Positions 2,030 to 39,000 of a DNA stretch of 64,000 nucleotides are shown here, piece after piece. The stretch is from Mytilus trossulus. Taxonomy: Eukaryota. Under the pieces are notes generated by a model. That model was not told the DNA's origin, made no database searches, and worked only from the letters and a program-made list of their open reading frames with translations. The DNA lies in NCBI RefSeq assembly GCF_036588685.1, contig NC_086377.1, forward strand, positions 29,264,001 to 29,328,000, given 5' to 3'. The position numbers were made by a program, and so were the translations under genes. Numbering within the stretch: the first letter of the stretch is position 1; every line of letters begins with the position of its first letter.

Positions 2030-3091
2030 CTTTATCTCCTTGGGTGCCTTTGTTTCCTGTCATTCCTTTATCTCCTAACGTTCCCTTGTCTCCTTGTGTT
2101 CCTTTATCTCCTTGTATTCCTTTATCTCCTGCTGTCCCTGTGTCACCTTGTGTTCCTTTGTTTCCTGTCATTCCTTTATCACCTATTGTTCCTTTGTCTC
2201 CCTGTGTTCCCTTCATTCCTTTGACGCCTTTCATTCCTTGCATTCCTTTCATACCTTTATATCCCGTCTCTCCCTTCATTCCCTTTGCTCCTTTATCTCC
2301 TTGTGTTCCTTCTGTTCCAGCCACACCTTTGTCTCCTTGTGTTCCTTTTTCGCCAGTCATGCCTTTAACACCTTTCATACCCTGCATACCCTTCATTCCT
2401 TTATATCCTGTTTCACCTTTCATTCCCTTCGTTCCTGACTCTCCTGTTGCGCCTTTATCGCCCAAAGTACCCTTTTCTCCGGTCATTCCTTTGTCTCCTT
2501 GTGTTCCTTTGTCTCCTGATGTTCCTTTATTACCTGTCATTCCTTTGTCACCTTGTGTTCCCTTATCTCCCGTCGTTCCCTTATCGCCTTGGGTTCCTTT
2601 ATTACCTGTCATACCTTTATCTCCTTGTGTTCCTTTTTCTCCTTTCATGCCTTTGACACCTTTCATACCCTGCATACCTTTCATTCCTTTATATCCTGTT
2701 TCACCTTTCATTCCCTTCGTTCCTGTCTCTCCTGTTGCGCCTTTATCGCCCAAAGTACCCTTTTCTCCCGTCATTCCTTTGTCTCCCATTGTTCCTTTGT
2801 CACCATCAGTTCCTTTGTCTCCATCTGTTCCTTTTGATCCCTTCATTCCTTTGACACCTTTCATTCCCTGCATTCCTTTCATACCTTTATATCCCGTCTC
2901 TCCTTTCATTCCTTTAGCTCCTCTATCACCTATTGTTCCCTTTTCCCCAGTCATTCCTTTATCACCTTGAGTTCCCTTGTTTCCTGTCATTCCCTTATCG
3001 CCGGTTGTTCCCTTTTCTCCTATCATTCCTTTATCTCCCAATGTTCCCTTTTCTCCCTTATTTCCAGTCATTCCTTTATCTCCTTGCGTAC
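2030..3091 (-). CDS. Collagen exon 19 (1062 nt, 118 triplets)
   Basis: Acceptor TTTAG|GT ACG CAA; donor AAA G|GTAGTG; continuous Gly-X-Y with no Pro. Confidence 0.92.
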
Positions 3092-6000
3092 CTAAATAAG
3101 TAATGTATCATTAGCATTGCTCACTTGCCACAGGTACAAAAAACTGTGCTCCAACACAAAATTACTTCGAAATATTTAACAAATTCGTACAAACTCTCCT
3201 TCCACTAAGATATAAGAAATATATCTCAAACAATTTAAACTTTTAAGAATCAGTCAGATTTCACATAATATAAGGTAAACTACATATAATTCTCACCTTT
3301 GTCACCAGCTGTTCCTTTGTCACCATCTGTTCCTTTTGATCCCTTCATGCCTTTGACGCCTTTCATTCCCTGCATTCCTTTCATTCCTTTGTAGCCTGTC
3401 TCGCCTTTCATTCCTTTTTCTCCTCTGTCACCTTGTGTGCCTTTTTCTCCAGTCAATCCCTTATCTCCTTGCGTTCCTTTGTCTCCATCAGTTCCTTTAT
3501 CACCGTCTGTTCCTTTTGATCCTTTCATTCCTTTAACACCTTTCATTCCTTGCATTCCTTTCATACCTTTGTATCCCGTCTCTCCCTTCATTCCTTTAGC
3601 TCCTTGTTCCCCATTTGTTCCTTTATCTCCTACTGTTCCCTTGTCTCCTTGCGTTCCTTTATCTCCACCAGTTCCTTTGTCACCAACTGTTCCTTTTGAT
3701 CCCTTCATTCCTTTGACACCTTTCATTCCTTGCATTCCTTTCATACCTTTGTATCCCGTCTCTCCCTTCATTCCTTTAGCTCCTTTATCACCAATTGTTC
3801 CTTTTGGTCCTGTCATTCCTTTATCTCCTTGCGTTCCTTTATCTCCATCAGTTCCTTTGTCTCCGTGTGTTCCCTTTTCACCAGTCATGCCTTTGTCTCC
3901 TTGTGTTCCTTTCGTTCCTTTATCACCTAGTGTTCCTTTTTCACCGAATTCTCCTTTGTCCCCTTGTGTACCCTTATCTCCAAGTGTTCCCTTTTGTCCT
4001 TTAGCTCCTTTGTCTCCTTGTGTCCCTTTTTCCCCATTCATTCCCTTGACACCTTTCATTCCTTGCATTCCTTTCATTCCCTTATATCCTGTCTCTCCCT
4101 TCATTCCTTTTACTCCTTTATCGCCGTGTGTTCCTTTTTCTCCTGTCATTCCTTTGACGCCTTTCATTCCTTGCATTCCTTTCATTCCTTTATATCCGGT
4201 CTCTCCCTTCATTCCTTTTGCTCCTTGATCCCCTTCCGTTCCTTTATCTCCTACTGTTCCCTTTGATCCTGTCATACCCTTATCACCCTGTGTTCCCTTT
4301 TCTCCTGTCATTCCTTTGTCTCCTGATGTTCCTTTCATTCCTTTATCTCCTTGCGTTCCTACAATTGATAATGCATATATAAAAATATGTTGACTGAGAA
4401 ATGTATATAAGAACGGTTGTATTAAATCTTCAACTAGTCGAATAAACATTAAGCAGAATTTGAAGACTCCCTTTGTACGATTTATAAGAAATTCTGACCG
4501 AAGAAAGTAATTTAAATATTAGTATTATTCTTTTCGTTGTGAAATTCTTCATCAATTTTAGATACAAATAATACTTTAAATACATTTGTTTTACTTGAAA
4601 CTTGTACATTGTATTTAAGAAATGAATGCTTCTTTTTGAACCTGTATTGGGGTGTAAAAGCGTTGACCGAAGTACATTTTGTATGCAGCGCGGAAGCGCT
4701 AAATTCTAAAAATGTGCGCACGGTCAACGCTTTTTCAACCCTATGAAGTTACAAAAAGAAGCATGCAATTCTTATAATTACATTTGTTTAGCTAGGATCA
4801 TGAAAACACGATTTACATCAAGTTGTAATATATTTTACCTGTGCACTTTATTATGGGACCTCGTGTCTTCAGAAATGATAAGTTTTATTGTGTAATGCAA
4901 TGGCTTAATGAATAACACGTGATGTGCAGTTAGCCAATCAGAATAACGTTTTATAATGAAACAAACATCTAATGTAATTATTTAATGTTTAACTCTATTT
5001 CATCCCATCTATAGAATGTATTTGAAGATTTTGGAAAATATATAGATAAATATAAGCCTTCGTATTAACAATTATAAAACCCTATGTTCGTGTAAAAAAG
5101 ACAATTTTATTGACAATGTTGTCGTTATTCAATTAAGAATCTTGCAACTTATTCATGTAAAATTCCCTGACAACGAGCCTTGTCCAACATAGAGATATTA
5201 ATACATAATGAAGATTGTTTTACTTTTTTTCAATTTGATACTTATATTTTATATTCGAGCGTCACTGATCAGTCTTTTGTAGACGATACGCGCGTCTTGT
5301 GTATATATAATAATCATGGTATCTATAATGAGTTTATTTAGCTATTATCTTTCTCTTTTAAAAAAGACCCATTCATTATCATGACATTGAGTTATCTATT
5401 TATCAATCTTACCTTTATCGCCATCAGTTCCTTTGTCTCCATCTGTTCCTTTTGATCCCTTCATTCCTTTAACCCCTTTCATTCCCTGCATTCCTTTCAT
5501 TCCTTTATATCCTGTTTCTCCCTTCATTCCTTTGGTTCCCTTATCCCCTTGCGTTCCTTTTGACCCATCCATTCCTTTGACTCCTTTCATTCCCTGCATT
5601 CCTTTCATGCCTTTATATCCCGTCTCTCCTTTCATTCCTTTGGTTCCTTGATCTCCCTGTGTTCCCTTTTCACCAATCATACCTTTGTCACCTAGTGTTC
5701 CTTTTTCGCCTGTCATTCCTTTGTCTCCCTGTGTTCCTTTTTCACCTGTAGCTCCTTTATCTCCATAAGTTCCCTTATCTCCTTGTGTCCCTTTGTCACC
5801 ATCTGTGCCTTTCTCTCCTTTCATGCCTTTGACGCCTTTCATTCCCTGCATTCCTTTCATGCCTTTGTATCCCGTCTCTCCCTTCATTCCCTTTGCTCCT
5901 TGATCTCCTTGTGTTCCTTTTATGCCGGTCATTCCCTTATCTCCTTGTGTTCCCTTCAATCCAGTCATTCCTTTGTCTCCTTGTGTCCCTTTTTCACCCG

Positions 6001-9000
6001 TCATTCCTTTGTCGCCCTGCGTTCCTTTGCTTCCAGTCATTCCCTTGTCCCCCTTATCACCATCTGTTCCCTTATTTCCGGTCATTCCTTTGTCACCTTG
6101 TGTCCCTTTTTCGCCTTTCATGCCTTTTACCCCCTTCATTCCCTGCATTCCTTTCATTCCTTTGTAGCCTGTCTCGCCTTTCATTCCCTTTGTACCTTGA
6201 TCACCTAATGTTCCCTTTTCTCCTGCCATTCCTTTAACACCTTTCATTCCCTGCATACCTTTCATTCCTTTGTAACCTGTTTCGCCTTTCATTCCTTTCG
6301 TTCCCATGTCGCCTTGTGTTCCTTTTGGTCCTAGCATTCCTTTATCTCCCTGAGTGCCCTTGTTTCCTGTTATACCTTTGTCTCCTTGTGTGCCCTTGTC
6401 ACCAAGTGTTCCCTTTTCTCCTGTCATTCCCTTGTCCCCAGTTGTTCCTTTCATGCCTTTATCTCCATGTGTTCCTGAAATCATCAAACATGGCATTGTT
6501 CATCTAATATGACTGTTTATTGAAGAAAAAAAATCAACATTTAAAAAAATCAACATGAATAAAAATCAAAAGTTGAATGTGAAAAGAACAAAACTTTGTT
6601 TACAATTCCTTTTTTAGAAAATCTCTTGATAGCTAAAGAAATCTTTAACATCTTTTTCTATATAAATGAAGTAAAACCTTCCTTTACATATGTTCATTAT
6701 ATTTTACATAAATAAGGCCGTTAGTTTTCTCGTTTGAATTGTTTTACATTGTCTTATCGGGGCCTTTTATAGCCGACTATGCGGTATGGGCTTTGCTCAT
6801 TGTTGAAGGCCGTACGGTGACCTATAGTTGTAAATGTCTGTGTCATTTTAGTCTTTTGTGGACAGTTGTCTCATTGGCAATCATACCACATCTTTTTTTA
6901 TATATATATACAGCGGAAGAGTACATTTCTCAAATAAAGTGACTTATGTATTAAAATTCGCAAATGTAGTACGAGTATCCGATTTTCAGATTTATAGCAT
7001 TAACACATGTAATGTTTAAAAAAAATGTAACACAATCAGAAAATCCTAGACCGAATAAATTTATAAAACCAACGAATTTAATTACTTTAATCGTATAAAA
7101 AAGTATTGTTATTGAAAAGGTTTGAATTTAAGCTGACCAAAATCAATCGATTTTACTATCGGATCTGGCTTAACCTCAGAACATTAGGACACAAAGTCTA
7201 CAAGCATGGGACCAAAACCAGCGACTGCTTAACGTACAGTTGGGTGTGTATTACCCAATGATAACCAAAATACGGGATACAAAATGTTGTGTTGACCCAA
7301 CTACGGGATACAAAGTGTTGTGTTAACTAATATATGGAATAAAGTGTTCTGTTAACAAACACACAGGGTAAAAAGTTTTATGTAAACAAATATACGGGGT
7401 GAGGTTTTTTTTCCCGATCTACGGGGTAAAGGTGTTGTGTTAATTAATGTACGACCTAAAATGTGTTGTTTTAAACAATAAACTAGATAAAAAGTGTTTT
7501 TAACCAAGTTACGGAGTAAACCAATATATCAGTAAATAGTGTTATTTATTATATAGTAGACATACATGTATAAATGAATACATAAATATTTAATGGGATA
7601 GATGTGTTTAGATTTCTAGGCAAAGCTAGACACGAGTATATACAACACATATTTTATGTATTCCTTTTTCTCCTGTCATTCATTTGTCCCCAAATATTTC
7701 AAGAGCCTTCTATTCACAGTAACTTTACTTGTTAGCCAACTATTATGAAATTATCACCAGTAATAACTAATAAACTAACAGTGAGTCTATAATAAGGTTC
7801 AAATAAAATAAAATAGAATGTTTTTGAAAAAAGCGACGCATAATTTTTCACCTAACATAAATACAATTGAAATAATACCGTACCTTTTTCTCCAGTCATT
7901 CCTTTATCTCCTTCGGTTCCCTTCTCCCCTTTCCTTCCTTTGTCTCCTTGTGTTCCCACCATTCCTTTGTCACCTTGTGTTCCTTTTCTTCCGGTCATTC
8001 CCTTATCACCTTGTGTTCCTTTGTCTCCATCAGTTCCTTTATCGCCTTGTGTTCCTTTTTCTCCTTTCATTCCTTTGACTCCCTTCATTCCTTGCATTCC
8101 TTTCATACCTTTGTATCCCGTCTCTCCCTTCATTCCTTTTGCTCCTTGTTCGCCTTTATCTCCTGTCGTTCCTTTGTCACCGTCTGTTCCTTTGTTTCCT
8201 GTCATTCCCTTATCTCCTTGTGTTCCTTTGTTTCCTGTAACACCTTTGTCACCTAGAGTTCCCTTTTCTCCTTTGTCACCATCTGTTCCTTTGGATCCCT
8301 TCATTCCTTTAACACCTTTCATACCTTGCATTCCTTTCATACCCTTATATCCTTGTTCTCCCTTCATACCTTTAGTTCCTTTATCACCTTGTGTACCATC
8401 TTCTCCTGTTGCTCCTTTATCGCCAAATGTTCCTTTACTACCATCCTCTCCAGGTTGGCCCTTATCTCCGTCAGTACCTTTTTGTCCTTTCATACCTTTT
8501 ACACCTTTCATCCCTTGCATTCCTTTCATTCCTTTATAACCTGTCTCTCCCTTCATTCCTTTGACTCCTATATCGCCTTGTGTTCCTTTCATTCCTGTCA
8601 TTCCTTTGTCTCCCACAGTTCCTTTATCGCCATCAGTTCCTTTGTCACCTTGTGTTCCTTTTGATCCTGTCATTCCTTTAACACCTTTCATTCCTTGCAT
8701 TCCTTTCATTCCTTTGTAGCCTGTCTCTCCTTTCATTCCTTTGGCTCCTTTATCGCCTTGTGTTCCTTCTGCTCCTTGTATCCCTTTATCCCCTTGAGTT
8801 CCTTTTACTCCGGTCATTCCTTTGTCTCCTTGTGTTCCTTTATTTCCTGTCATTCCTTTATCACCTAGTGTACCTTTCTCTCCTGTCATTCCCTTATCAC
8901 CATCAGTTCCTTTCATCCCCTTGACTCCTTTATCTCCCTGTGTTCCTAGCAATGATAAGAAATTAATATGTAATAATGACTAGATTAACTACATTCACAA

Positions 9001-12000: not shown

Positions 12001-15000
12001 TGATGAAATAGCTCATTCGCAAATAATCAAAATAATGTCATTTAGACGGCAAAAACAGTTCATGTAAATCTCACCTTTATCGCCATCAGTTCCTTTGTCA
12101 CCATCTGTTCCTTTTGATCCCTTCATTCCTTTAACGCCTTTCATTCCCTGCATTCCTTTCATGCCTTTATATCCCGTCTCTCCTTTCATTCCTTTGGTTC
12201 CCTTATCGCCTTGTGTTCCTTGTGTTCCTGTCATTCCTTTATCCCCTTGGGTTCCTTTTGCTCCAGCCATTCCTTTGTCACCTAGCGTTCCTTTTTCTCC
12301 AGTCATACCCTTGTCACCTTGTGTTCCTTTTTCTCCGGTCATACCCTTGTCTCCATCTGTTCCTTTTGATCCTTTCATCCCTTTGACACCTTTCATTCCC
12401 TGCATTCCTTTCATGCCTTTATATCCCGTCTCTCCCTTCATTCCTTTGTCTCCTTGCGTACCGATCATACCCTTATCGCCTTGTGTTCCCTTTGGTCCAG
12501 TCATTCCTTTATCTCCTTGTGTTCCTTTAGTTCCTGTCATACCTTTATCTCCCAGAGTTCCTTTATCACCGTCTGTGCCTTTCTGACCTTTCATTCCCTT
12601 GACACCTTTCATTCCTTGCATTCCCTTCATTCCTTTATATCCCGTCTCTCCCTTCATTCCCTTTGTTCCTTTATCGCCCTGTGTGCCCTTTTCTCCTAAA
12701 TCCCCTTGTGTTCCCTTTTCTCCTGTCATTCCTTTGTCTCCTTGAGTTCCTTTCAAGCCGGTCATTCCTTTATCTCCTTGTGTTCCTTTATCTCCATCAG
12801 TTCCTTTGTCACCTTGTGTTCCTTTCTCGCCTGCCATGCCTTTAACACCTTTCATTCCCTGCATTCCTTTCATACCTTTATAGCCTGTCTCGCCTTTCAT
12901 TCCCTTTGCACCTTGATCACCTTGCGTTCCCTTCTCTCCTATAATTCCTTTATCTCCTTGTGTTCCCTTCAATCCAGTCATTCCTTTGTCTCCTTGTGTT
13001 CCTTTTTCGCCTTCCATGCCTTTAACACCTTTCATTCCCTGCATTCCTTTCATTCCTTTGTATCCTGTTTCCCCTTTCATTCCCTTTGTACCTTTATCAC
13101 CTTGTGTTCCCTTCTCTCCTGACATTCCTTTATCTCCTTGCGTACCGATCATACCCTTATCACCTTGTGTTCCCTTTGACCCAGTCATTCCCTTATCACC
13201 TTGTGTTCCTTTTGTTCCTGTCATACCTTTATCTCCAAGAGTTCCTTTATCTCCGTCTGTTCCTTTCTGACCTTTCATTCCCTTGACACCTTTCATTCCT
13301 TGCATTCCCTTCATTCCTTTATATCCCGTCTCTCCCTTCATTCCCTTTGTTCCTTTATCGCCCTGTGTGCCCTTTTCACCTAAATCACCTTGTGTTCCCT
13401 TTTCTCCTGTCATTCCCTTATCTCCTAGTGTTCCTTTTTCGCCGGTCATTCCTTTGTCTCCAACAGTTCCCTTTTCTCCCTTCATTCCTTTTACCCCTTT
13501 CATACCCTGCATTCCTTTTATGCCTTTATATCCCGTCTCTCCCTTCATTCCTTTAGTTCCTTCAGCACCTTGTGGTCCTTCAATTCCCTTATCTCCTTGT
13601 GTTCCTTTTTCTCCTGTCATTCCCTTATCTCCTAGTGTTCCCTTTTCGCCGGTCATTCCTTTGTCTCCATCAGTTCCTTTGTCTCCATCAGTTCCCTTGT
13701 CACCATCTGTTCCTTTTGATCCCTTCATTCCTTTTACGCCTTTCATTCCCTGCATTCCTTTCATACCTTTATATCCCGTTTCTCCCTTCATTCCTTTAGT
13801 TCCCTTATCTCCTTGTGTACCCTTGGTGCCAGTCATTCCTTTGTCTCCCTGCGTACCTGTGTTAAGTAAAAGAAAGTTGCTAAAAAAAATATTCCCTTAT
13901 AAAAATAGATTTTGTTAATCTAAAAACGTATGTATTACTAGTTGCATTAAGACATAGACAATATATTTCTATTGAACCACAAAGTTCAATTAGTTGTCAC
14001 GAATCAGAACGTATCGAGTAGCAACTATTTATGACTTTGACAGTTCAATTATTGATTTTTTCATTTATTAGAAAAGTTTTATCGCTAAATATCATCCATT
14101 TTTATACCAATTGAAATCTCTTGACTTAAGAGGTAGTGTTGTTTGCCATTAAACATTCTCTTGACTTAAGAGGTAGTGTTGTTTGCCATTAAACATTCTC
14201 TTGACTTAAGAGGTAGTGTTGTTTGCCATTAAACATTCTCTTGACTTAAGAGGTAGTGTTGTTTGCCATTAAATATTGATTTGCTGTTATTGAATATCAA
14301 TTGTATAGTCGACCACGGATTATCGGGCACGACCTACGTACCCTTTCGAAAAAAACCTGCGTTTGCCACCCGTTTCCATGTGGTTTGTTTAATCATACTT
14401 TTTTCTATAACAGTCAATTTAATTTGACAATTTTGAGAGGGGTTTCTGTGTCCATTTTTTGTAATACTGTAAAAATTCTGGGTAGAACTCTTATGAGACT
14501 GTTTGAAAGAAAGCTCTTATTCTAATTTGGATTAATTGCCATCATATGTAGTTGATCATGAACTATACGTCAGTGTGTTCCAGGTATTCTATAGGAGTTA
14601 TGGGACTATTTTTGGGGGAGTATTGTAAGATTCATACATGTACGTTGTGAACGCAACTCTTCTAAGTTTTTTTGACATAGTTACTCTCGTATACATATAG
14701 TACATTTACCATATTGTGACATGCCCGGCGAAGAAGGATTGTTTTCTTAGGTCATGTTGACGGTTATGCTTCGACTTATTGCCGCCCTAGCATCTATCAA
14801 CAATAATTCATTCAAGAAATACGGTAGCTTAACACATATGGAAATTCACATACGGAAATTAAGAATACGGAAATTTAGAATACGGAAATTTGATGTAGAC
14901 ATCATATTGTGTGGTGTCTTTTAATTCAATTGTGCACATTTCATATAATGTTACGTAAACAAAAAGCTACTCAATATTTCTTCTTTATGCATATTTTTTT

Positions 15001-24000: not shown

Positions 24001-27000
24001 GCTTTTATCATTGCGAAAAATGCGAAAGAAACTTGTGATCGCATTTTTAAATTTATATATAAATAAAACAGGACTTTTCTCAAAATGGCATTTCAGTCTA
24101 AAATGAAAAAATGCAATAATAAATGCACACAATAGTTTTTGAATCTACAGTATCTAAATTCAAATCTCACCTGGTTGTCCTTTATCTCCATCGGTTCCCT
24201 TGTTTCCTGTCATTCCTTTATCTCCTAGAGTTCCTTTGTCTCCTTGTGTTCCTTTGTCTCCTAATGTTCCTTTGTCGCCTGTCGTTCCCTTGTCACCTTG
24301 TGTTCCTTTCGCTCCTTTGATACCCTTCATTCCTTGCATACCTTTCATGCCTTTGTAGCCTGTTTCTCCTTTCATTCCTTTATCTCCTAGAGTTCCTTTG
24401 TCTCCTTGTGTTCCTTTGTCTCCTAGTGTTCCTTTGTCGCCTGTCGTTCCCTTGTCGCCTTGTGTTCCTTTCACTCCTTTTGCACCCTTCATTCCTTGCA
24501 TACCTTTCATGCCTTTGTAGCCGGTTTCTCCTTTCATTCCTTTATCTCCTTGAGTTCCTTTCATGCCTATCATTCCTTTGTCCCCTTGTGTTCCTTTCTC
24601 TCCTATCATTCCTTTATCTCCTTGCGTTCCTTTGTCTCCATCAGTTCCTTTGTCGCCTTCTGTTCCTTTTGCACCTTTCATTCCTTTCACACCTTTCATT
24701 CCCTGCATTCCTTTCATTCCTTTGTAACCTGTCTCGCCTTTCATTCCTTTTGTTCCCATATCTCCTTGGGTTCCCTTTGCGCCTTTCATTCCTTTGTCAC
24801 CTTGCGTTCCCGATGGACCTTTTGGTCCATCTTCTCCTATTGCTCCTTTGTCGCCAACTGTGCCTTTATTACCAGTCACTCCTTTATCTCCATCTGTTCC
24901 TTTTGATCCCTTCATTCCTTTAACTCCTTTCATTCCTTGCATTCCCTTCATTCCTTTGTAGCCTGTTTCGCCTTTCATTCCTTTAGTTCCTTTATCGCCT
25001 TGTGTTCCTTTTTCACCTGTATCACCTTTATCTCCTTGTGTTCCCTTCTGTCCTGTCATACCTTTGTCTCCATCTGTTCCTTTAGATCCCTTCATTCCTT
25101 TCAATCCTTTCATTCCTTGCATTCCTTTCATACCTTTATAGCCTGTCTCGCCTTTCATTCCTTTCGTTCCTTTATCACCTAATGTTCCCTTTTGACCTGT
25201 CATACCCTTATCACCCGTGGTTCCTTTTCCTCCTGTCATTCCTTTATCTCCTTGCGTTCCTTTATCTCCATCAGTTCCCTTGTCACCTAATGTCCCTTTG
25301 TCTCCTTTCATTCCTTTAACTCCTTTCATTCCCTGCATTCCTTTCATTCCTTTGTAACCTGTTTCGCCTTTCATTCCTTTCGTTCCCTTATCGCCCTGTG
25401 TTCCTTCTGGTCCTGTCATTCCTTTATCTCCTTGTGTTCCCTTTTCACCTTTATCTCCGATAGTTCCCTTTTTTCCCGTCATTCCTTTGTCGCCTTCTGT
25501 TCCCTTGTCTCCTACAGTTCCCTTATCTCCTTGTGTTCCTTTTAGTCCTGTCATTCCTTTGTCTCCTTGTGTTCCTTTAATAAAAAATAAATTATATTAA
25601 CGAGATATAAGATGAAATATATATGTTTACGTGATTTCTACAGGTTTTAGGTAGCACCTAAATCAGAATAATTGTCCGACGATTATTTAATTCTACAAGT
25701 TTTCACAAATATACACGGATAGTTTTGTTCTGTTTTATTTCATTTTATGTGGATTGTTGTATCCTGGTCGACAAATACAGGGAGTTGTTTAGTCTGTTAA
25801 TGTGTCAATTTGCCGTTTCGGAATCTAACCCTGTCTGAGTAATATTTTCAAATGCTTACACCAACACGTCGTTATTTGCTAACAACGTCGCAAACAATTG
25901 AAATTAAACCAATGGCATGACTTGGTTTTTATTTTAGGGTACGAACAATAAAGGTACCCATAGTATTTTAGCTTTTGAAACGGAGGATTGGGTTTTATTT
26001 CCGATGGGTAATTTTGACTGAGTCTTGTTTTTAATGGCGTTTAAAGATTTTATCGTAGAAGATTCCAACCCTGCAAACATGTCTGATCCCGATCCTTTTT
26101 AATTTTTTGTCAGTTGTTCGAGTTTTGTTTTTGTGTTGTTGCTTTTTTTTTTAAATTAGGTTTATCTGTATAGTGTTATCATGAAATGTTCTTCCCTGTA
26201 ATAAAAGAGGGACGAAAGATACCAGAGGGACAGCCAAACTAATAAATCGAAAATAAACTGACAACGCCATGGCTAAAAATGGAAAGAACAAACAAACAGA
26301 CAATAGTACTGTACTTTGAAATACTTTCATGGAACACAGTGATAATGAATATTCCCTCTAGCATGTTTGATTTCGTATAACGAAGGACGTTACCCCCCCC
26401 CCCTCTTGTTTTTGTATATCATTAACAGACATGAGGATTCAAAAATTCTGCGTCACTCACCTATGTCAATACGCGTATTTAACAATATTATAGGCACTAT
26501 AAAACGTTGTGGATAAGAATAGAACATATGATATTTTTGTCTATTTACAGTTTCTGAAGGACACCTACGGGTGCGGGTGTTTCTCGCTACATTGAATACC
26601 CATTTGTAGCCTTCGGCTGTTGTCTGCTCTATGGTCGGGTTGTTGTCGCTTTGACACATTCCCTATAACCTTTCTCAATTTTATCTCTCTAAAATTTTAG
26701 CCCAAACCCCAAAATGGTTGACAAAATCGGCATTACTGAAAATCGTCATTTAATGGCAATAAATTCTATCAAAAGCCTACCGTGGATGCCATTTGAGGGT
26801 ACTAACTCCTATCAAGAGTCTACCATGGGTGTTGATTTAATATGACTTATTAAAAATCTTACTTTGCTCATAATTTTTACTTTTAAATTGTTCATCTGTC
26901 TTTTATCATTTTATAGATAATAGAGAAAAGGGGTAAAAGTTACTGCTTAGAGGTAACAATTATCATTGAAGAGCAAGATCTCTAATAGAGTGTCGACTTA

Positions 27001-30000
27001 ACATTTCGTCCATGTTGTCTCCTTATCAGATCTCAACTTGCTGATCATTTTTTGCTATTTAAAGATAAAAGGCAAACATACTAAATTTTGTATGACGTTC
27101 ATTATTACTGAACTAGTTCAAATATTTGTTAAGGGGCCAGCTGAAGGACGCCTCCGCTTTCGGGAGTTTCTCGCTGCATTTAAAACCCATTAGTGGCTTT
27201 TGAATGTTGACGCTCTTTGGTCGGGTTGTTGTGTCTTTGACACATTCTCCATTTCCATTCTCAATTAAAAATGGGCAAAGAGCGATAACTCTGAACAGCA
27301 GTCGACTGACATGTTTGGCCATTCAACTTATTTGTAGATTAATAAATAAATGTTTGGTTATTCAAGCTTTAGAATTTATCTAAAATTACATTAGGATGCA
27401 AACAAAACGCAAATGATTGGTAACAATTGTTATCAAAGGGCAATAACTGAAATAAGGAGTCGTCAGAAAATTTCAACTTTGTCTTGTCTCTCGAGCTGAT
27501 CATTTCTGATATTTTGAAATTTTCTTTTTTATCTAAAATTGTTGAAGGCAAAACGTATTACAGGCAAAAATAACATACAAACCGTAAAATTTGTGATGTA
27601 CGAGCAATAACTGTTTTAATGAGTAAAGACAGATCTCAGCATAATTCACACATCTACCAAGATTAATTATCTTTCCAATTATCTCTATTTATAGCAGTTT
27701 CATGATTAAAGACACAAACATGCATTTCCCCTCATGTTCTATTTTTAGCCATGTTGAATTTGGTCAAATTGTGAAATAGAATCAGAGGAGAAAATTTGTG
27801 CAAAGTTATCGCAAGACGGGCGACGGACGTCGAGTTATAAGTCAAGCTAAATTGGCCCTTTAGGCCAGATGAGCTAACAAATTGAAATGATTAACCAGTT
27901 ACCACATCAAAACTTTGTATTTTAATCACCACACACTTTGTATTGCACGATTGCTAAGGGACGACATCAAAAGATCGAAGTAGAATAAAAAAACTTAAAT
28001 CAAATAGTTTGGGGGTGGGGTAAAGATTCTGTAAGTTTTGTATATATAAAATCGATCTTTACATATATCCCTATTGGTCAATCAATTTTTTTCCAAATTA
28101 AGTTAAGAGGGGGTGGGGGATGGTCAGTAAAAAAAATGTGTATTAAGTTTTTTATCCTACATTGAACTTTTGATGTCGTCCCTAAGAGGACAACAAATGT
28201 AAAGTTTCACTATAATTTGTGTAGCATATATCAAATCAAATATATTTACAGGCAAACACAAACACAAAGTACTGATGCGCATAGTCATACATGTAGTAAA
28301 CAACTTTATGAGCGTATAACTGTATTTACTTACCAGGTTCTCCTTTATCTCCGGTGGTGCCTTTACCTCCGATCATTCCTTTATCACCTTGTGTTCCTTT
28401 GTCTCCTTGTGTTCCTTTGTCCCCTAGAGTTCCCTTTTCTCCCTTCATTCCTTTAACACCTTTCATTCCCTGCATTCCTTTCATTCCTTTGTAACCTGTC
28501 TCTCCCTTCATTCCCTTGGTTCCTTTGTCTCCTTGTGTTCCTTTCCCTCCTGTCATTCCTTTGTCACCTAGTGTGCCTTTGTCCCCAGTCGTCCCTTTGT
28601 TTCCTGTCATTCCTTTATCACCAGATGTTCCCTTATCACCTTGTGTTCCTTTGTCTCCTTGCGTTCCCTTCATTCCTGTCATCCCTTTATCTCCGTATGT
28701 CCCTTTGTCACCATCTGTTCCTTTATCTCCTTGTGTTCCTTTCATCCCTGTCATTCCTTTGTCTCCCATTGTTCCTTTATCACCATCAGTTCCCTTGTCA
28801 CCATATGTTCCTTTTGATCCCTTCATCCCTTTAACACCTTTCATTCCCTGCATACCTTTTATTCCTTTGTAACCTGTCTCGCCTTTCATTCCTTTCGTTC
28901 CCTTGTCGCCTTGTGTTCCTTTATTTCCAGTCATTCCCTTATCACCTTGTGTTCCTTTCAGTCCTTTGACACCCTTCATTCCTTGCATACCTTTCATGCC
29001 TTTGTAACCTGTTTCTCCTTTCATACCTTTGTCTCCTTGGGTTCCCTTCATTCCTTTCATTCCCTTGTCGCCTTGAGTTCCCTTCATTCCTGGCATTCCT
29101 TTATCCCCTTGTGTTCCCTTTTCTCCATCCATTCCTTTGTCACCTTGGGTTCCTTTGGAACCTGGTGGTCCTTCTCCTCCTTTCTCACCTTTGTCCCCAA
29201 CTGTGCCTTTACTTCCTTTCATTCCTTTAATACCTTTCATTCCTTGCATTCCTTTCGTACCTTTATATCCCGTTTCTCCTTTCATTCCTTTAGTTCCTTT
29301 ATCTCCTAGTGTACCTTTCTCCCCTGCCATTCCCTTGTCGCCTTGAGTGCCACCTTGACCTTTGTCACCAATTGTTCCCTTTTCTCCTGTCATTCCTTTG
29401 TCGCCTTGTGTTCCTTTACTTCCTTTCATTCCTTTAATACCTTTCATTCCCTGCATTCCTTTCATACCTTTATATCCTGTCTCTCCTTTCATTCCTTTAG
29501 TTCCTTTATCTCCTTGTGTTCCTTTCATCCCTGTCATCCCTTTGTCTCCTTGTGTTCCTGGTGTGCCATCTGCTCCTTTGTCACCTTGTGTTCCTTTGAC
29601 ACCTTTGTCCCCAATTGTTCCTTTTTGACCAGTTACACCTTTATCTCCTTGCGTTCCTTTGTCTCCATCAGTTCCTTTATCACCGTATGTTCCTTTCTCT
29701 CCTTTCATTCCTTTGACTCCCTTCATTCCTTGCATTCCTTTCATTCCTTTATATCCCGTCTCTCCCTTCATTCCCTTTGCTCCTTTGTCTCCTTGTGTTC
29801 CTTTCATGCCGGTCATTCCTTTGTCGCCTATAGTTCCCTTTGGTCCTACGGGTCCTTTAAATCCTGTTTCACCTTTATCTCCAGTAGTGCCTTTCATTCC
29901 CTTCATTCCTTTATCGCCATCAGTTCCTTTGTCACCATATGTTCCTTTTGATCCCTTCATTCCTTTGACGCCTTTCATTCCCTGCATTCCTTTCATGCCT

Positions 30001-33000
30001 TTATATCCCGTCTCGCCTTTCATTCCTTTCGTCCCCTTATCACCTTGTGTTCCTTTGTTTCCTAAAAGTAAATTGCAGACGTGTGGATATTTAAAAGAAA
30101 TAAAAAGTGTTACACATCAGTTCTATTATTGCAATGGTTACCGGACATTTTAAAATACCAAAGTAACCAAACCAGGCACTTCATATCTGAGAAATATGCT
30201 ATATGTCGTCAATTTAAGATTGTTTTCTTACATTTTTGCATTAATTTAATTGACAAGGATCACCAGTCCCTCGCTTTTCGTCTGATATCTTTTAAATAAC
30301 TAAATTATTTTGTTTTAATGCCACGTGGCAAAGGCCTCACGGTGATTTGAGATGAAGAAATGCAATAAAAAATAAGGGCTTTTCCTTTACTGTGTGTGTG
30401 TGTATTCTTATTTTGTTCTTTTTATTTTGCTATGCAAATATTGGATTTTGTGTCATTGGTAGATACTCTAGTCTATATCATTTGTTTTTTTCTATTGTAT
30501 CTATTTTCAGCGGCTGACATCGTTTTGCTGTTAAAAAAAGAATGTTTTTTGTAACATAAGGAATATACACCCATTGGTGGCATTCGGCTGTTGTCTGTTC
30601 TATGGTCGAGTTGTTGTCTCTTTGACACATTCTCCATCTCTATTCTCAATTTTATTATTCAGTGGTATCTATAGGTTATAAACATCGTTTAAATCATTTT
30701 TTGTAGTTATGATTTCATCTTTTTTGAGGATGGATATTTCATAAAATTACTTGTTTGATTCTAAATTCCTTGATAATGAAATGTGTTTTAGAAGTCACAG
30801 AGAAAATGGACATTGTTTCCATTGAAGAGCAGTAAAAACATACTATGTTTGTGTCATTTTGGTCTTTTGTGGATAGTTGTCTCATTGGTAATCATACCAC
30901 ATTTTCTTTTTTAAATATTCCCGTTAATGTATGAAAAAAAGGTGTTTTTTGCGAAATAAAAAAGAATGTGTGTCCCGAGAAATAAAATCACCAGAACATG
31001 AGGTTGGTTGGCGATGGCTTACTTTACCTGCAATTAGTCAAAGTTTCATACTACATACCTGTTGCGCCTTTGTCTCCTGTCGTTCCTTTGTCACCTTGTG
31101 TTCCTTTTAGTCCTGTCATTCCTTTATCACCATCAGTGCCTTTGTCGCCGTCTGTTCCTTTATCTCCAGTCGTCCCTTTGGATCCTGTCATTCCTTTATC
31201 ACCATCCGTTCCCTTATCGCCTTGTGTTCCTTTAGATCCTTTCATCCCTTTGATACCTTTCATTCCTTGCATTCCTTTCATTCCTTTGTAACCTGTCTCG
31301 CCTTTCATTCCTTTAGTTCCTTTGTCTCCTTGAGTTCCTTTTAGACCTGTCATTCCTTTATCTCCTTGTGTTCCTTTATCTCCTGTCGTTCCTTTGTCTC
31401 CTTGTGTTCCCTTGTCGCCTGTCGTTCCCTTGTCACCTACTGTTCCCTTGACCCCTATTAGAATGGATGATTTAAAAAGAAATTAAAGGTCAATAGCAGT
31501 GGTGTCGTGTTTAAACCGTTCTTTATATAAAATAGATGTGGAGATGTATAAGTTATTTTACGACCGTTAAATTCATACTGTATACAAAATATTACAATGG
31601 CCTCTAAATTGCTATTTCAAAATTTGAATAGTTGCAATGTATTGAAGATGCAAATATCACTTATTGATTTCGAATGTCCGAAACGCTTTCTTTGTTAACC
31701 TTCATACGGATACATCAAAACCCGAATACTTGATATCCTCTGAATAACAAGACCTAAACATTAAACCCCGCTATATTATTTATGTATGTGCCTGTCCCAG
31801 GTCAGGAGCCTGTAATTCATCGGTTTTCGTTTGTTTATGTGTTACATATTTGTTTTTCGATTATTTTTTTTTACATAAATAAGGCCGTTAGTTTTTTCGT
31901 TTGAATTGTTTTACATTGTCTTATCGGGGCCTTTTATACATGTAGCTGACTATGCGGTATGGGCTTTGCTCATTGTTGAAGGCAGTACGGGGACCTGTAG
32001 TTGTTAATGTTTGTGTCATTTTGGTCTTTTGTGGATAGTTGTCTTATTGGCAATAATACCACATCTTCTTTTTTTTTATATTAAAAGAGTTCTGTAACCA
32101 AAGGGGATCTACAATTATCCAAAGTCTTCTGAGCTGTATATTCTTATGCTTTCATTTAGAGTGTTTGTAGTATGTGACCCATTCATAACATTTTACATAT
32201 TGATTGCAAGACTTATGGACTTTGTTCATTATTGAAGGCAGAACGGTGACCTATAGTTGTTAATGTTTGTGTTGTTTTGGTCTTTTGTAGATAGTTGTCT
32301 CATTGGCAATCATACCACATCTTTTTTATATCAAAATTTTATCGTTGTTATGATAATGTTTCAAAAGTATGTTCCGGAACAATATGGAACACAAATTATC
32401 CAAACAACGGCTCAATCTCAAAGAAGCGAATGATATGACTACATAGTTACGTTTTTTGGTTTGTTAATTTTGACGCATTTATGAATAAGATTGGTAGTTT
32501 ACAATCTGATAAAAGAACAACGATTAAATGATCCTTCCATCGCTCATTGTTGAAAGATTAACATCATTACTATAATGAAAAACTAAACTTATATATATAT
32601 ATATTGTGTCGAAGTTTGTATACTTTCCTCATTTTTCTTCTCGAAGTTGCCAAAATTATATGGTAATCCATTTCTTTGTTCTTTCATTTGTGTATTCTTC
32701 AATTTGTTTGAACATTTTTCTCTTTTTTTTATATATATAAATTGGCAATTTTTTACTTTTATTTTTTATTAATTGACAATCTTTGTATTTTCGGTTTTGA
32801 ATTTTTTGTCTTGTCTGCACTTTTACCCAATTAATAAAATTCCGAAAAAAACCCTCATACAAACACGTTCAATTTCACAGTGAATATGTGTGTCAAGACT
32901 AAGTGTACATAAAGCGATGTCGACATGTAATTTTATGATAAACTAACAATTTATTATTTTAATGATTTGATGCAGAATTCCGAAGTTGACTTGAGTATTG

Positions 33001-36000
33001 TAAGATACATAAGTGTCTTAAAGTATTAGCTGTAAGAGCCTATAAATCAGGTGTATTTCAAGCTTCAGCGATCCAATATTCCTGTTTCGAGCCGTGTATT
33101 AACGTGGTGGTTGTATTAAAATAGTTTATTAAAATAGTTTTATAGAATTAAAAAATTGGAATTATTGGTAAATAAACGTTTAAGGATATTGTACAATCAA
33201 TGTCAATTAGATATCTGTACAAACCTTTATCTCCTTGTGTTCCTTTATCCCCTTGCGTTCCTTTCGAACCAGGTGTCCCCTTTCCACCTTTATCTCCTTG
33301 TGTTCCCTTGTCACCTACAGTTCCTTTATCTCCATCTGTTCCTTTAGACCCTTTCATTCCTTTAACACCTTTCATTCCCTGCATTCCTTTCATTCCTTTG
33401 TAACCTGTCTCTCCTTTCATTCCTTTTGTTCCTTTGTCTCCTTGAGTTCCTTTAAGACCTGGCATTCCTTTGTCTCCTTTTGGTCCATCTTGTCCTATCA
33501 TGCCTTTGTCTCCTTGTGTTCCTTTATCCCCTTGTGTTCCTTTCATTCCTGTCAGTCCTTTATCTCCCTGTGTTCCTTTCTGTCCAGTTATGCCTTTATC
33601 TCCTTGTGTTCCCTTCCCTCCTGTCATTCCTTTGTCACCTAGTGTGCCTTTATCTCCCGTCGTTCCCTTATCTCCGTGTGTTCCTTTTCCTCCTGTCATA
33701 CCTTTGTCTCCTTGTGTTCCTTTAGACCCTTTCATACCTTTGACGCCTTTCATTCCCTGCATTCCTTTCATTCCTTTGTAACCTGTTTCGCCTTTCATTC
33801 CTTTAGTTCCTTTGTCACCTTGTGTTCCTGGTTGACCAATCATTCCCTTGTCTCCATTTGTTCCTTTTTCTCCTTTCATTCCTTTGACGCCTTTCATTCC
33901 CTGCATTCCTTTTATTCCTTTGAATCCTGACTCTCCCTTTATTCCCTTGGTTCCTTTGTCTCCTTGTGTTCCTTTCCCTCCTGTCATTCCTTTGTCACCT
34001 AGTGTGCCTTTATCTCCCGTCGTTCCCTTATCTCCTTGTGTTCCTTTTCCTCCTGTCATACCTTTGTCTCCTTGTGTTCCTTTGGATCCTTTCATCCCTT
34101 TGACACCTTTCATTCCCTGCATTCCTTTCATTCCTTTGTAACCTGTCTCTCCTTTCATTCCTTTGGTTCCTTTGTCTCCTTGAGTTCCTTTTAGACCTGT
34201 TATTCCTTTGTCACCTTGTGTTCCTTCCTGTCCAACCATTCCTTTGTCTCCCTGTGTTCCTTTATCCCCTTGTGTTCCTTTTGGTCCTATCATTCCTTTA
34301 TCTCCTAGTGTCCCTTTAGCCCCTATGAAATAATGTTTAATGATGTTAGAATAATATCTGTATGTCATGCATTGTTATTTGCAAGGATGTGAAAGAAGTG
34401 CTATAAGGTCCGAGTACACAGTTATTTTGTAGTGCATTTCTTTTAGACAATAAATGAAAATTTTAAAAATCCCACCAGCGCTTTCTCAATTATATTTTTA
34501 CAGTGTGTTGTACTACTTTTGGGACAAATTATATCAAAATTATGGCAAACTTCATCAGCTCTAACTCAAAATATGGACAATTTTATGTTAAGGGGGTCTT
34601 GAAATCTTTTGACAGCTTCCAAAGTGCTAGTTTTTGACCTTTTTCAGCTGGACCTTTTATTTATTTAATATTTATGACACAATTATTTTAAAAGTGTCAT
34701 TTCGACCCCCTACTTGCTACATGAGGCATAAAACATGGATAAATAAATTTGGAAGGGGTATAAAAAAAATTGGCAGGTAACACACTGTCCACACTAAGGA
34801 CTATATTTGTAAAGGACGATAACTGCATACTCGGGCCATCAATAGAAAAATAACGTTGCTCAATCTGCAGTCGATGTTAAAGTTTTCTAATCCAGTTTAA
34901 AAGCATGCAATTAAAAAAAAAGAGTCCGCAAGCATTACATTTTTATATATTACTTTTCAGTTTTTTTCATATGATATGAATTGTTTACAATTTGCAATGT
35001 TTGAAATAAAATCGGCAACATAGATTTCTTTATGACATTTACTTCTAGTATACAGATAAATTATAATCATTGTAATCAATTTCCGTAACACGTGGGTCTT
35101 TTTAGTTGTCCATTTATTTGCTTCATTTAAAGATGACCAAAATATAACCTGACATAGTATGATTATAGTCAAATTTAAAAAGATAAAAAGGAAAGGTTTC
35201 ACTGTTTTTCTTCCGTTCATGTTAAAAATATAAAATCCTTATTTGGTCCATGTTTTATTACCAACCCTGTTCAATCCAAAGTTACGATAAGTTAAAATAT
35301 ATCTATAAAATTCTGTAAATAAGCCTTTTAGTTTACCTATCATTCCTTTGTCTCCTTGTGTTCCTTTTCCGCCTGTCATTCCTTTATCTCCATCTGTTCC
35401 TTTAGCTCCTGTCCTTCCTTTGTCACCTAGTGTGCCTTTGTCCCCAGTCGTCCCTTTGAAGCCTGTCTCTCCCTTCATTCCCTTGGTTCCTTTATCTCCT
35501 TGTGTTCCTTTATTTCCCGTCATTCCTTTGTCACCTAGTGTGCCTTTGTCTCCAATCGTTCCCTTATCTCCTTGAGTTCCTTTCCCTCCTTTTATACCTT
35601 TGTCTCCTTGTGTTCCTTTAGACCCTGTCATTCCTTTGGCGCCTTTCATTCCCTGCATTCCTTTTATTCCTTTGTATCCCGTTTCTCCTTTCATTCCTTT
35701 AGCTCCTTTGTCTCCTTGTGTTCCTTTTTTGCCTGTCATTCCTTTATCTCCATCTGTTCCTTTAGCCCCTGTCATTCCTTTGTCACCTAGTGTTCCTTTG
35801 TCCCCAGTCGTCCCTTTGTTTCCTGCCTCTCCCTTCATTCCCTTGGTTCCTTTATCTCCTTGTGTTCCTTTCCCTCCTGTCATTCCTTTGTCACCTAGTG
35901 TGCCTTTGTCCCCAATCGTTCCTTTGTTTCCTGTCATTCCTTTATCACCAGCTGTTCCCTTATCGCCTTGTGTTCCTTTTGCTCCTTTCATTCCTTTTAC

Positions 36001-39000
36001 ACCTTTCATTCCCTGCATTCCTTTTATTCCTTTGTAACCTGTCTCACCTTTCATTCCTTTAGTTCCCTTGTCACCTTGCGTTCCTATTTGACCTATCATT
36101 CCTTTGTCACCTTGCGTTCCTTTTTCGCCTGTCATTCCTTTGTCTCCTTGTGTTCCCTTGTCACCGATCGTACCTTTATTTCCTGTCATTCCTTTATCGC
36201 CTAGAGTGCCTGGGTTTCCGTTCATTCCCTTTTCACCTTTATCTCCTTGTGTTCCTTTCGTTCCTGTCATACCCTTATCCCCATGCGTTCCTTTGTCTCC
36301 TTGTGTTCCCTTATTTCCAGTCTCGCCTTTATCTCCGTGCGTTCCTTTGTCGCCAGAAGTTCCTGAAAAATTAAGGTTAATGTTACATGTACATGAGTTG
36401 TTTACACTATGAAAGTGTATTACAATCAATATATTAAAAAATATAATAAAGTAAAACCACGTGATTGCAGAGTATCAAATACGCTGACCATTTGTTATGT
36501 TGTTTGCACGTATTAAAAGAATATGGGTGGAGGTACTTTTTCCTATTTAGACATGTGTAGAGAAAGCCGTGTGTGGATTATTTTTGTATATGTTTTGTGT
36601 AAATACACAACTGTTTTATTAATACAGGTTGTTTTTAAATTATATATGCTACACTTTTTATCCCTTTTTACCGGAGTGGTATGAGCGAAATATAATTTGG
36701 ATTAAGTCGTGTATCAAACAAATTTCAAAAGTTGGGCCTAACTGACTTAAAATTAGGAGCCAACTGAAGTCACGCTTCAGTGACCGCACAAAAGGGGTGG
36801 ACCCTGCCCCTCCCCCTAGATTTGCCTCTGGGATTCGCTTATGATACTGATTACAACCTGTATACATTGTAGTTTTTAATCTGTTTAAAACAAATTTTAA
36901 AGTACCGAATAAATTTTTGAGGAAATGTCATGTTATATATCATTTTATTTCGTATACTAGTATCTTAAAAAGAAAAATACTACTGTTTGATAATCTTTTG
37001 TTCTGTCTTCTTTGTGTTAAAGTTTAAAACATCTACCAACGATGGTAAAGGAAAGGTCTCTTTTCAAGCCTCCATATTGGATTTTAAATAATCAGTGAGG
37101 AACTACAGACAACCTTTAAACTTTAATAGTATTTATTGAAAATCAGGTGCGGAGGCCAGAGAAGCGACATTTATTAATAATATCCACAATGTAGTACAAT
37201 TTCAGCCTTTATGAAAGTACGAATTTAAAAACTTTATACTGTTGTAACTTGTAAAGCGATATCGACTGATTCATCATAAAAGTCACGTAAAAAGACATGG
37301 AGACCTAAGCTAAATCTAAAGTAACCAACCGTGTAAAAAACATACCTTTAGATCCTTTATCTCCCGCCATTCCTTTGACGCCTTTCAATCCCTGCACTCC
37401 TTTAATTCCTTTATATCCCGTTTCTCCCTTCATTCCTTTTGTTCCTTTGTCACCTTGTGTTCCTTTATTTCCTGTCATTCCCTTGTCCCCTTGGGTTCCC
37501 TTCGAACCATCTTTACCATCCTCGCCGTTTACACCTTTGTCACCTTGTGTTCCTATTGCTCCTTTGTCGCCTTGCGTTCCTTTATCTCCGGTTGTTCCTT
37601 TGTCGCCTTGTGTTCCTTTATTTCCTATCGCTCCTTTGTCTCCTTGTGTTCCTTTATTTCCTGTCGCTCCTTTATCGCCTTGTGTTCCTTTGTTTCCTGT
37701 CATTCCTTTATCACCTTGTGTTCCTTTGTTTCCTGTACCTCCTTTCATTCCCTTATCGCCTTGTGTTCCCTTGTCTCCTGACGTTCCTTTGTCTCCTGTA
37801 GTACCCTTATCTCCTGTTGTACCTTTATTTCCAGTAAATCCTTTGTCGCCTAGTGTTCCTTTCATTCCTTTGACGCCTTTCATTCCTTGCATACCTTTTA
37901 TGCCTTTGTAGCCCATCATTCCTTTCAATCCTTTGATTCCTTGTGTTCCCTGTATTCCTGCCATTCCTTTGTCTCCTTGTGTACCCTTGTTTCCTGTCAT
38001 TCCTTTATCACCTTGCGTTCCCTTGTCTCCTTTTATTGCTAAAAAGAAAAAGAAAACGATTTTATAACACGGTACGTTCTATAAACTAACGGAGCTCAAG
38101 AAAGGGAACATAAGATTAAAATTGTCTTTTAAAGAATACAGAATGATTCATTTATATGGTTTGTTCTATACCACATTTTGTTTTAAGGAAAAGTAAAATC
38201 ACAAAAATACTTAACTCCGCGGAAAATTCAAACGGAATATTCCTATCAAAATGGCAAAATCAAATGATAAAACACATCAAGCGAATGGACAACAACTGTC
38301 ATATTCCTGACTTGGTACAGGTAGAAAATTGTGGATTGAATCTGGTTGTATAGCGCTAAACTTTTCACTTGTATGATAGTCACATCAAATTCCATTATAC
38401 CGGGGTATTTAAAACGATGTGTAAACACAACAGACAAGATAGGTAAATTAGTCACAATATGGGTACATCAGTAAGCATTGTGTCACAATATGGGTACATA
38501 AGTAATCATTGTGTCACAATCTCATAACAAACGATGTAATCTACTTCGTTGTTTGTCTGTATATATATAAAAAAAGAAGATGTGGTATGATTGCAAACGA
38601 GACAACTGTCCACATGAGACCAAAATGACAAAGACATTAACAAGTATCGGTCACCGTACGGCCTTCAACAATGAGCAAAGTCCATACCGCATAGTCAGCT
38701 ATAAAAGGTTCCGATATGACAATGTAAAACAATTCAAACGAGAAAACTAACGGCCTTATTTATGTACAAAAATTGAAGGAACAAAATGTAACACATAAAC
38801 AAACGACAACAACTGAAATTCAGGCTCCTGACTTGGGACAGGCACATACATAAATAATTTGGTGAACATTTGCTAGTTTGTAAATGATTAACTTGTACTA
38901 GCATTATGGCTGTACAGAGTCATGTAATCTGGTTCGTTGTTAGTTTGTATATGAACATTTGCTATTTTTTAGATGATTTACTTGTACTAGCATTATGGCT

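Follow-up and report, generated by a model that had tools for sequence, protein, structure and literature searches.

The derivation of collagen exon sizes from one ancestral unit is a classic case. In vertebrate fibrillar collagens, the helix is about 1,014 residues long with a D-period of 234 residues, introns lie between codons, and exons follow the 54-bp rule (54, 108, 162, 45, and 99 bp). Exon lengths have been kept in these genes while content has diverged, and the accepted reason for frozen collagen lengths is that unequal chains shift the register in the trimer. The spider flagelliform silk gene consists of tandem large exons of similar size that have been reshaped by intragenic recombination, its introns being homogenised as much as the exons or more. 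The cuticle collagens of annelids and vestimentiferans form an uninterrupted, micrometre-long helix that is high in threonine and rich in hydroxyproline. Here we analyze 64,000 nt of the genome of Mytilus trossulus (positions 29,264,001 to 29,328,000 of contig NC_086377.1, assembly GCF_036588685.1), referred to below as the window; its contig is called C5 (C5:29264001-29328000), with coordinates on the forward strand. The content of the region is best read as most of one Mytilus collagen gene, which repeats the logic of a single ancestral unit at a 20-fold larger scale, the unit being 1062 nt (354 residues).

As under the fibrillar 54-bp rule, the exon lengths of the mussel gene are integer combinations of a putative ancestral unit, sums hold even where individual exons vary, and lengths are conserved among paralogues long after sequence divergence. 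The mussel gene is unlike the fibrillar genes in the size of its unit (1062 nt, about 20 times larger), in its phase-1 introns, which split Gly codons, in its helix of 6,846 residues, and in its exons of 153–1782 nt; it has no D-period-like periodicity, and its chromosome carries no COLFI domain. With the flagelliform silk gene it shares the layout of a structural-protein gene made of tandem large exons; unlike in the silk gene, the introns are unalignable and exon length alone has been kept. It resembles the cuticle collagens in helix length and threonine content, whereas its protein contains 0.6% Pro, 19% Lys, and 8% Met.

Length and content are uncoupled in this gene: exon length is exact while conserved sequence cassettes move. 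With moderate confidence, we attribute this to an old event in which a 1062-nt unit was duplicated, and thereafter to the loss of introns, patch gene conversion, and a general intolerance of insertions and deletions (indels). The locus offers a natural system in which selection on helix length or register can be separated from selection on sequence, and in which length-neutral conversion can be measured against slippage in a coding repeat.

Exon Structure

A strong negative GC and AT skew over about 2–38 kb of the window indicates a gene on the minus strand. Its 22 helical exons (E1–E22) encode an unbroken Gly-X-Y sequence of 6,837 residues, or 2,279 consecutive triplets; the helix reaches 6,846 residues if an inferred head exon is included. 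Sixteen of these exons lie in the window, and E17–E22 were found in 60 kb fetched past the window start. All 16 Gly-X-Y runs in the window open at an AG in which the G also begins a Gly codon, and all 16 close at an in-frame GGT, so that the donor is G/GT (the slash marks the splice site). The introns between helical exons are phase 1 in 21 of 21 cases, each splitting a Gly codon (AG/G…G/GT). A first-pass annotation of this DNA had listed exon lengths and their sums over part of the gene, and with these bounds all of them were reproduced; E1 (684 nt) lay outside the interval covered. The gene is laid out from 5′ to 3′ as follows. All helical exons have AG/G and G/GT bounds, and further evidence is named where it was found.

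44640..44700, minus strand: inferred first coding exon (candidate), an open frame with an ATG at 44700 and a signal-peptide-like start; 3′ limit provisional
42952..43071, minus strand: inferred head exon, phase 1, read from the sequence; junctions putative, donor G/GTAAAA
37346..38029, minus strand: E1, 684 nt (38 x 18), off the lattice
35337..36362, minus strand: E2, 1026 nt (1062 - 36)
33225..34322, minus strand: E3, 1098 nt (1062 + 36); E2 + E3 = 2124
31059..31454, minus strand: E4, 396 nt, of the short "GVKG..." type
28334..30061, minus strand: E5, 1728 nt; E4 + E5 = 2124
24171..25574, minus strand: E6, 1404 nt (1062 + 342)
22535..23164, minus strand: E7, 630 nt
20206..21339, minus strand: E8, 1134 nt; E6 + E7 + E8 = 3168 = 3 x 1062 - 18
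17318..17659, minus strand: E9, 342 nt
12075..13856, minus strand: E10, 1782 nt; E9 + E10 = 2124; donor side of a 588-nt contig skip
11145..11486, minus strand: E11, 342 nt; acceptor side of the 588-nt skip (runs X5 and X6); Pfam PF01391
9921..10640, minus strand: E12, 720 nt; E11 + E12 = 1062; donor at 9921 with one contig joint, CT..AC ends
7884..8945, minus strand: E13, 1062 nt, four GYK cassettes; one contig stops fitting at 7886
5413..6474, minus strand: E14, 1062 nt, five GYK cassettes
3297..4358, minus strand: E15, 1062 nt, five GYK cassettes
2030..3091, minus strand: E16, 1062 nt, four GYK cassettes; Pfam PF01391
C5 29261953-29263014, minus strand: E17, 1062 nt, beyond the window start
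C5 29259814-29260875, minus strand: E18, 1062 nt, beyond the window start
C5 29258967-29259290, minus strand: E19, 324 nt, beyond the window start
C5 29257454-29258587, minus strand: E20, 1134 nt, beyond the window start
C5 29256894-29257046, minus strand: E21, 153 nt, beyond the window start
C5 29254230-29255471, minus strand: E22, 1242 nt, beyond the window start

The head exon would encode a His/Tyr-rich stretch with N-x-T sites followed by the first three triplets of the helix, and had no match in Pfam. At the other end, E22 carries a threefold tandem repeat of 37 triplets and E20 one of 17 triplets. In the 30 kb that follow E22, no open frame contained a recognizable C-terminal domain. 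Within the 50 kb after E22 there are no more Gly-X-Y runs, and the C-terminus of the gene was not located there.

Between 7.8 and 13.8 kb of the window, the exons are covered by contigs from four RNA-like runs, each of a different study. Intron depth is zero, with one exception, a dispersed repeat at about 9.06–9.26 kb. Contigs of two runs (X5 and X6, two studies) skip 588 nt, which is the size of the intron between E10 and E11, with an offset of 3 nt that is within alignment slack. The E12 donor (9921) is matched by one contig joint with canonical CT..AC ends, and one contig ends its fit at 7886, near the E13 donor (7884). The check by RNA that had been suggested for the junctions thus bore out the intron between E10 and E11 and lent partial support to the donors of E12 and E13; the rest were placed by sequence signals. 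In one contig, from run X6, the E12 donor (9921) is connected to a site lying 180 nt into E13; the joint (window 8765-9920) has canonical CT..AC ends and reflects either the use of an AAA-GG acceptor within the exon or a chimera created when the repeat was assembled. Most contig joints were rejected as evidence of splicing, since they run backwards, skip kilobases, or have non-canonical ends, and were taken to be de Bruijn chimeras of a repetitive transcript.

The 1062-nt Lattice

Six consecutive exons (E13–E18) are exactly 1062 nt long. The first-pass annotation had counted four, which is the number inside the window; the other two lie beyond its start. Upstream of this run, sums of neighboring exons take over: 1026+1098, 396+1728, and 342+1782 each amount to 2124 nt, 342+720 to 1062 nt, and 1404+630+1134 to 3168 nt. 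Equal-length coding units are thus repeated in tandem, and the lattice extends over about 16 units. When it is counted from the start of E2, with one slip of 18 nt permitted (in E6–E8), an intron falls exactly on 12 of 17 lattice points; of the other five, two have their intron 36 or 90 nt ahead of the point and three lack an intron. A further four introns are found 342, 342, 342, and 396 nt past a lattice point. The lattice fails at both ends of the helix, that is, at E1 (684 nt) and across E19–E22 (324 + 1134 + 153 + 1242 = 2853 nt).

A permutation check on the exon sums had been proposed, and the lattice withstood it. Among the 11 exons of other lengths, seven boundary pairs are spaced by a multiple of 1062 nt, against about 1.1 expected. 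The excess has P ~9e-4 under random lengths (in 18-nt units) and P = 0.03 under the conservative null in which the order of the exons is shuffled. Judged from the same 11 exons alone, 1062 nt is the best period in the range of 306–3200 nt; with a tolerance of 18 nt it scores 21 of 66 pairs, and the runner-up scores 14.

Exon Content and Periodicity

The protein is built of G-x-x-G-x-K hexapeptides (e.g., GTQGDK and GMTGEK) and of 80 conserved Gly-Tyr-Lys (GYK) cassettes, each made up of five hexapeptides (30 residues). The counts and positions reported earlier for these cassettes were exact: E13–E16 contain 4, 5, 5, and 4 of them, the first at triplets 26, 23, 19, and 23. E17 contains five, the first at triplet 13, and E18 four, the first at triplet 21. 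The accompanying statement that the 1062-nt exons are not collinear copies was also confirmed. Ungapped identity among the six is mostly 55–60%, a level that the hexapeptide repeat gives as background; the pairs that exceed it are E14/E15 (0.705), E16/E18 (0.668), and E14/E16 (0.621). Gapped identity is 76–83%, at a cost of 8–21 gaps per pair.

It had been suggested that the exon lengths record selection on an axial unit of about 100 nm, acting as a stagger in the manner of the D-period. Periodicity was examined on exons joined solely as a cumulative axis for autocorrelation and spectra; all database searches were run exon by exon. The 80 cassette positions show no period of 118 triplets (the Rayleigh power, expected to be 1, is 0.27 over the full gene and 0.41 over E2–E18). 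Likewise, no 354-aa period was detected in charge or in acidic, basic, Met, Thr, or hydrophobic residues (periodogram power of 0.07–0.7). Based on the Rayleigh spectrum and the periodograms, 354-aa periodicity and its simple harmonics were rejected, and the D-period-like stagger was not upheld.

At long range, the autocorrelation of the nucleotide sequence is highest at 708 aa, or 2124 nt (z 3.2, rank 1/485), and modest at 354 aa (z 2.0). The 708-aa value is due to the E9-E10/E11-E12 duplicate and to the exon pairs E15/E17 and E16/E18, and probably goes back to a duplication of 2124 nt that has left relics. Over their first 420 nt, E10 and E12 are collinear and 85–97% identical, and the 3′ ends of the two introns that precede them (E9 to E10 and E11 to E12) can be aligned, with a score of 37.5 against a shuffle maximum of 21.5. 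E15 and E17 have a common cassette spacing (12, 37, 20, 20), offset by six triplets. E5, E7, E10, and E12, each of which follows a short exon, open with an identical cassette-first signature.

Age of the Array and Probable Length-Neutral Copying

When introns of different units were compared by BLAST, only pieces of dispersed repeats were found, and alignment of intron ends yielded no pair besides the one preceding E10 and E12. With a single alignable pair of ends, intron homology was rejected as proof of segmental duplication. Introns that cannot be aligned are consistent with great age, yet they provide no positive evidence for a duplication array. The 39 canonical cassettes of 30 residues are identical in protein, but their synonymous sites are near saturation (AAA 20/AAG 19, GAG 23/GAA 16, TAC 21/TAT 18, GGT 14/GGA 13/GGC 10), and their mean pairwise identity is 0.86. 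Together with the unalignable introns, this shows that the array is old and that selection on the protein is strong.

Nearly identical tracts within the array do not follow the lattice. There are 103 tracts that span 108 nt or more and are at least 93% identical, most of them offset by non-multiples of 1062 nt (examples are 684, 801, 3312, 153, 360, 216, and 162), and several lie inside exons of exactly 1062 nt. The near-identical tracts measure 110–260 nt. If the off-lattice tracts were insertions of 160–680 nt, each would have to be balanced by a deletion of matching size within its exon. E18 provides the clearest example: its nt 23–242 and nt 239–458 are 93.6% identical, while the same stretch of its sister E16 has a self-identity of 65%; the second cassette stands at triplet 45 in both exons. 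A module of E18 thus appears to have been overwritten by its neighbor with no change in length. E16 and E18 also match block by block: the blocks are displaced by -18, 0, and -36 nt, and by the end of the exon the displacement is back at 0, the trace that patches copied from a shifted register would leave.

Exon Lengths in Other Collagen Genes

A tandem pair of collagen paralogues is located 1 Mb away (C5:28270001-28325000). Eleven of their 13 exon lengths are equal (270, 171, 567, 126, 90, 252, 90, 450, 342, 342, and 171 nt; a differing exon has 216/225 nt), although the identity at X/Y positions is only 21–40%. Like the giant gene, these paralogues have phase-1 AG/G…G/GT introns and lengths frozen between copies, including even 342-nt exons. 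Unlike it, they have small exons (90–567 nt), no lattice, no GYK cassettes, and an ordinary composition, and they are about 55% identical to it. A frozen exon length amid diverging content is therefore ordinary for collagen genes in this genome. Since nearby collagen paralogues freeze their lengths too, there is no need for a constraint that applies to a 100-nm unit in particular. The earlier claim that exon length is under constraint stands to this extent: the array is old and six of its exons are still exactly 1062 nt, and the constraint is not necessarily one on 100 nm.

A register with a partner chain had also been considered. It found no support: the genome holds no partner-chain gene with the same motifs, and the next best collagen is about 55% identical. 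Three loci on contig C11 (C11:46219187-46221949, 46249254-46251872, and 46303231-46306017) contain very large Gly-X-Y frames (up to 2196 nt) that are rich in Lys and Tyr (GYKGQKG-type). These frames are broken by short interruptions of the Gly-X-Y pattern, not by introns, and are about 55% identical to the giant gene.

Origin of the Lattice

The explanation that we hold with moderate confidence starts from a coding unit of 1062 nt (59 hexapeptides) whose tandem duplication, long ago, would have produced the central part of the gene. Part of the duplication would have involved a 2124-nt super-unit in which an additional intron lay some 342 nt inside the unit; the cassette-first openings of E5, E7, E10, and E12 and the alignable intron ends before E10 and E12 support the inheritance of this intron. 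Through subsequent loss of introns, neighbors would have been fused into the exons of 1404, 1728, and 1782 nt, and sums, not single exons, would be multiples of 1062 because of this fusion. Afterwards, patch gene conversion may have copied sequence between non-homologous places of the hexapeptide array. Because a patch replaces a tract by an equally long one, cassettes could be moved, added, or removed at constant length. Changes that altered length would have been purged by selection. A 15-residue in-frame deletion in the helix of mouse type II collagen is reported to be dominantly harmful (PMC2289514). In-frame indels of collagens are known as dominant-negative, and with unequal chains shifting the register, a new length allele would be harmful in the heterozygote whatever its length. 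Ancestral exon duplication followed by length-neutral gene conversion had been named as the alternative to a selected unit in the first-pass annotation, and it fits the off-lattice tracts and the pairs E10/E12 and E16/E18 well.

Several observations weigh against this explanation. Patch conversion from a shifted register cannot here be told apart from pairs of exactly compensating indels. Most splice junctions stand on sequence signals, and exon lengths were compared within one genome. The lengths of 21 of 22 exons are divisible by 18, while the frame demands only multiples of 9; this is not fully explained, and 33 of 79 cassette-to-cassette spacings are odd in triplets, the hexapeptide register flipping often inside exons. 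Three boundary shifts are offset in the adjacent exon (1026/1098; 396/1728 versus 342/1782; 630/1134, short by 18). Such compensated shifts are not predicted by plain freezing and hint at a constraint on local sums or at single events that moved an intron. Finally, the virtual lattice points in the fused exons E5, E6, and E10 have no junction-like signature, and one of them lies inside a cassette.

Selection on the 354-residue unit itself (about 101 nm), as a stagger or register by one unit with length kept and content free, would account for six diverged exons of exactly 1062 nt and for sums that are compensated in adjacent exons (1026 + 1098, 396 + 1728). It would also suit the age of the array, since in an old array some selection on length is needed, and the weak autocorrelation at 354 and 708 aa could be read in its favor. 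A stagger, however, requires periodic interaction sites, and the Rayleigh power of the cassettes at 118 triplets is far from indicating any; charge and hydrophobicity are silent at 354 aa, and the 708-aa value has its explanation in the duplicated exons. In addition, the first and last helical exons are off the lattice, and one unit block is 18 nt short. We consider selection on the unit unlikely, though the compensated shifts and the divisibility by 18 leave it some room. The equal exons might instead serve as interchangeable splicing modules that give length isoforms differing by whole units. With all helical introns in phase 1, skipping of any exon would keep the Gly-X-Y frame, and the X6 joint into E13 suggests that non-canonical joints may exist. 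Frame-preserving skipping, however, needs no equal lengths; no exon-skipping joint was present among the contigs, which cannot show isoforms, and most odd joints are repeat-induced assembly chimeras, with backwards order or non-canonical ends. Splicing modules are accordingly improbable. The broader proposition that the 354-residue lattice is functional, either as an assembly register of about 101 nm or as exon-sized modules for length isoforms, in a proline-poor collagen with no described relative, is one that we regard as quite unlikely. If it were true, the lattice would be a second, independent design of the D-period kind written into exon structure.

Recent amplification would make equal lengths possible with no selection at all, and the local tracts at 93–97% identity are what it would produce. 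It is contradicted by six exons that are at background identity ungapped, by introns that are unalignable save one pair, and by the near-saturated synonymous sites of the cassettes. In an array this old, and under such strong selection on the protein, equal lengths are beyond what recent amplification can explain; we give it only a very slight chance. An artefact of wrong splice calls or of a mis-assembled repetitive gene would find room in the fact that RNA-like contigs confirm one intron exactly and that splicing could in principle use any AAA-GGN or G-GT that an exon contains. On the other hand, 22 of 22 helical runs are bounded by AG/G and G/GT exactly where the Gly-X-Y frame breaks, intron depth is zero, the 588-nt skip agrees, the window contains no N, and a collapse would not yield six diverged exons of equal length. 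An artefact is hardly credible. Duplication with patch conversion and indel intolerance thus remains the explanation that we prefer.

Protein Composition and Class

The product is best read as a secreted collagen about 2 micrometres long, of an atypical kind that is almost without proline. Its residues include 19% Lys, 12% Thr, 8% Asp, 8% Met, and 0.6% Pro, so that the high Pro/Hyp content at X/Y positions expected of collagens is lacking. Stabilization of such a helix would need Lys-Asp/Glu pairs or modification. The Pfam collagen model PF01391 matched E16 with 207 bits (E 2e-62) and E11 with 70 bits, the cut-off being 27.2. A homotrimer model of E11 scored 0.38 against 0.00 for the best control, which may reflect the memory that the model has of collagen structures; the mark used for this score was attained by 21 of 30 solved one-chain pairs and by none of 23 single chains. 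Between runs of the homotrimer model at least 55% of contacts agreed, with a pLDDT of at least 61 and with contacts along the whole length at a stagger of 1–3 residues, possibly again through memory of collagens. The protein is not a fibrillar collagen: the chromosome has no COLFI domain (PF01410 matched on contig C2 only, and not on C5), and the gene has neither 54-bp phase-0 exons nor a D-period.

No described protein with the cassette was found in the collections searched. HMMER against 1.84 billion representatives returned generic collagens at no more than 51% identity, none with the cassette; a word-indexed protein library queried with E16 held no protein with it; and an exact look-up of ten exon open reading frames in a protein collection found none present. 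A literature search found no published account of the gene. MGK-rich shell-matrix proteins of M. galloprovincialis (PMC4517812) have a similar composition and were rejected as relatives, as they consist of Met-Pro-Glu-Gly repeats and are not collagen. The gene is of practical interest in that it has high coverage in RNA-like runs and is missing from the protein libraries searched. It encodes a nearly proline-free helix of about 2 micrometres, rich in Lys, Tyr, and Met, in an animal that is studied for protein materials.

Repeats in Introns and Flanking DNA

Tandem and dispersed repeats were observed in several introns and upstream of the gene. The intron between the head exon and E1 contains two satellite arrays (window 38863-40740), in which an 89-nt unit is repeated 14.5 times and an 83-nt unit six times, with 91–92% identity. 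In the intron just downstream of the head exon, at window 42342-42790, a tandem array reads (Arg-Pro-Ser-Val)n or (Asp-Gly-Arg-Thr)n on opposite strands. In the intron between E16 and E17 (window 1-1400), segments 1-520 and 864-1400 are a dispersed repeat, for which at least 40 copies were scored at 85–91% identity on many chromosomes, often in tandem. Upstream of the gene, window 53536-54187 and 55217-56176 hold degenerate 24-nt arrays (about 27 copies each, 71–75% matches) and an 80-nt array, and the local skew at 54–56 kb is due to these tandem arrays.

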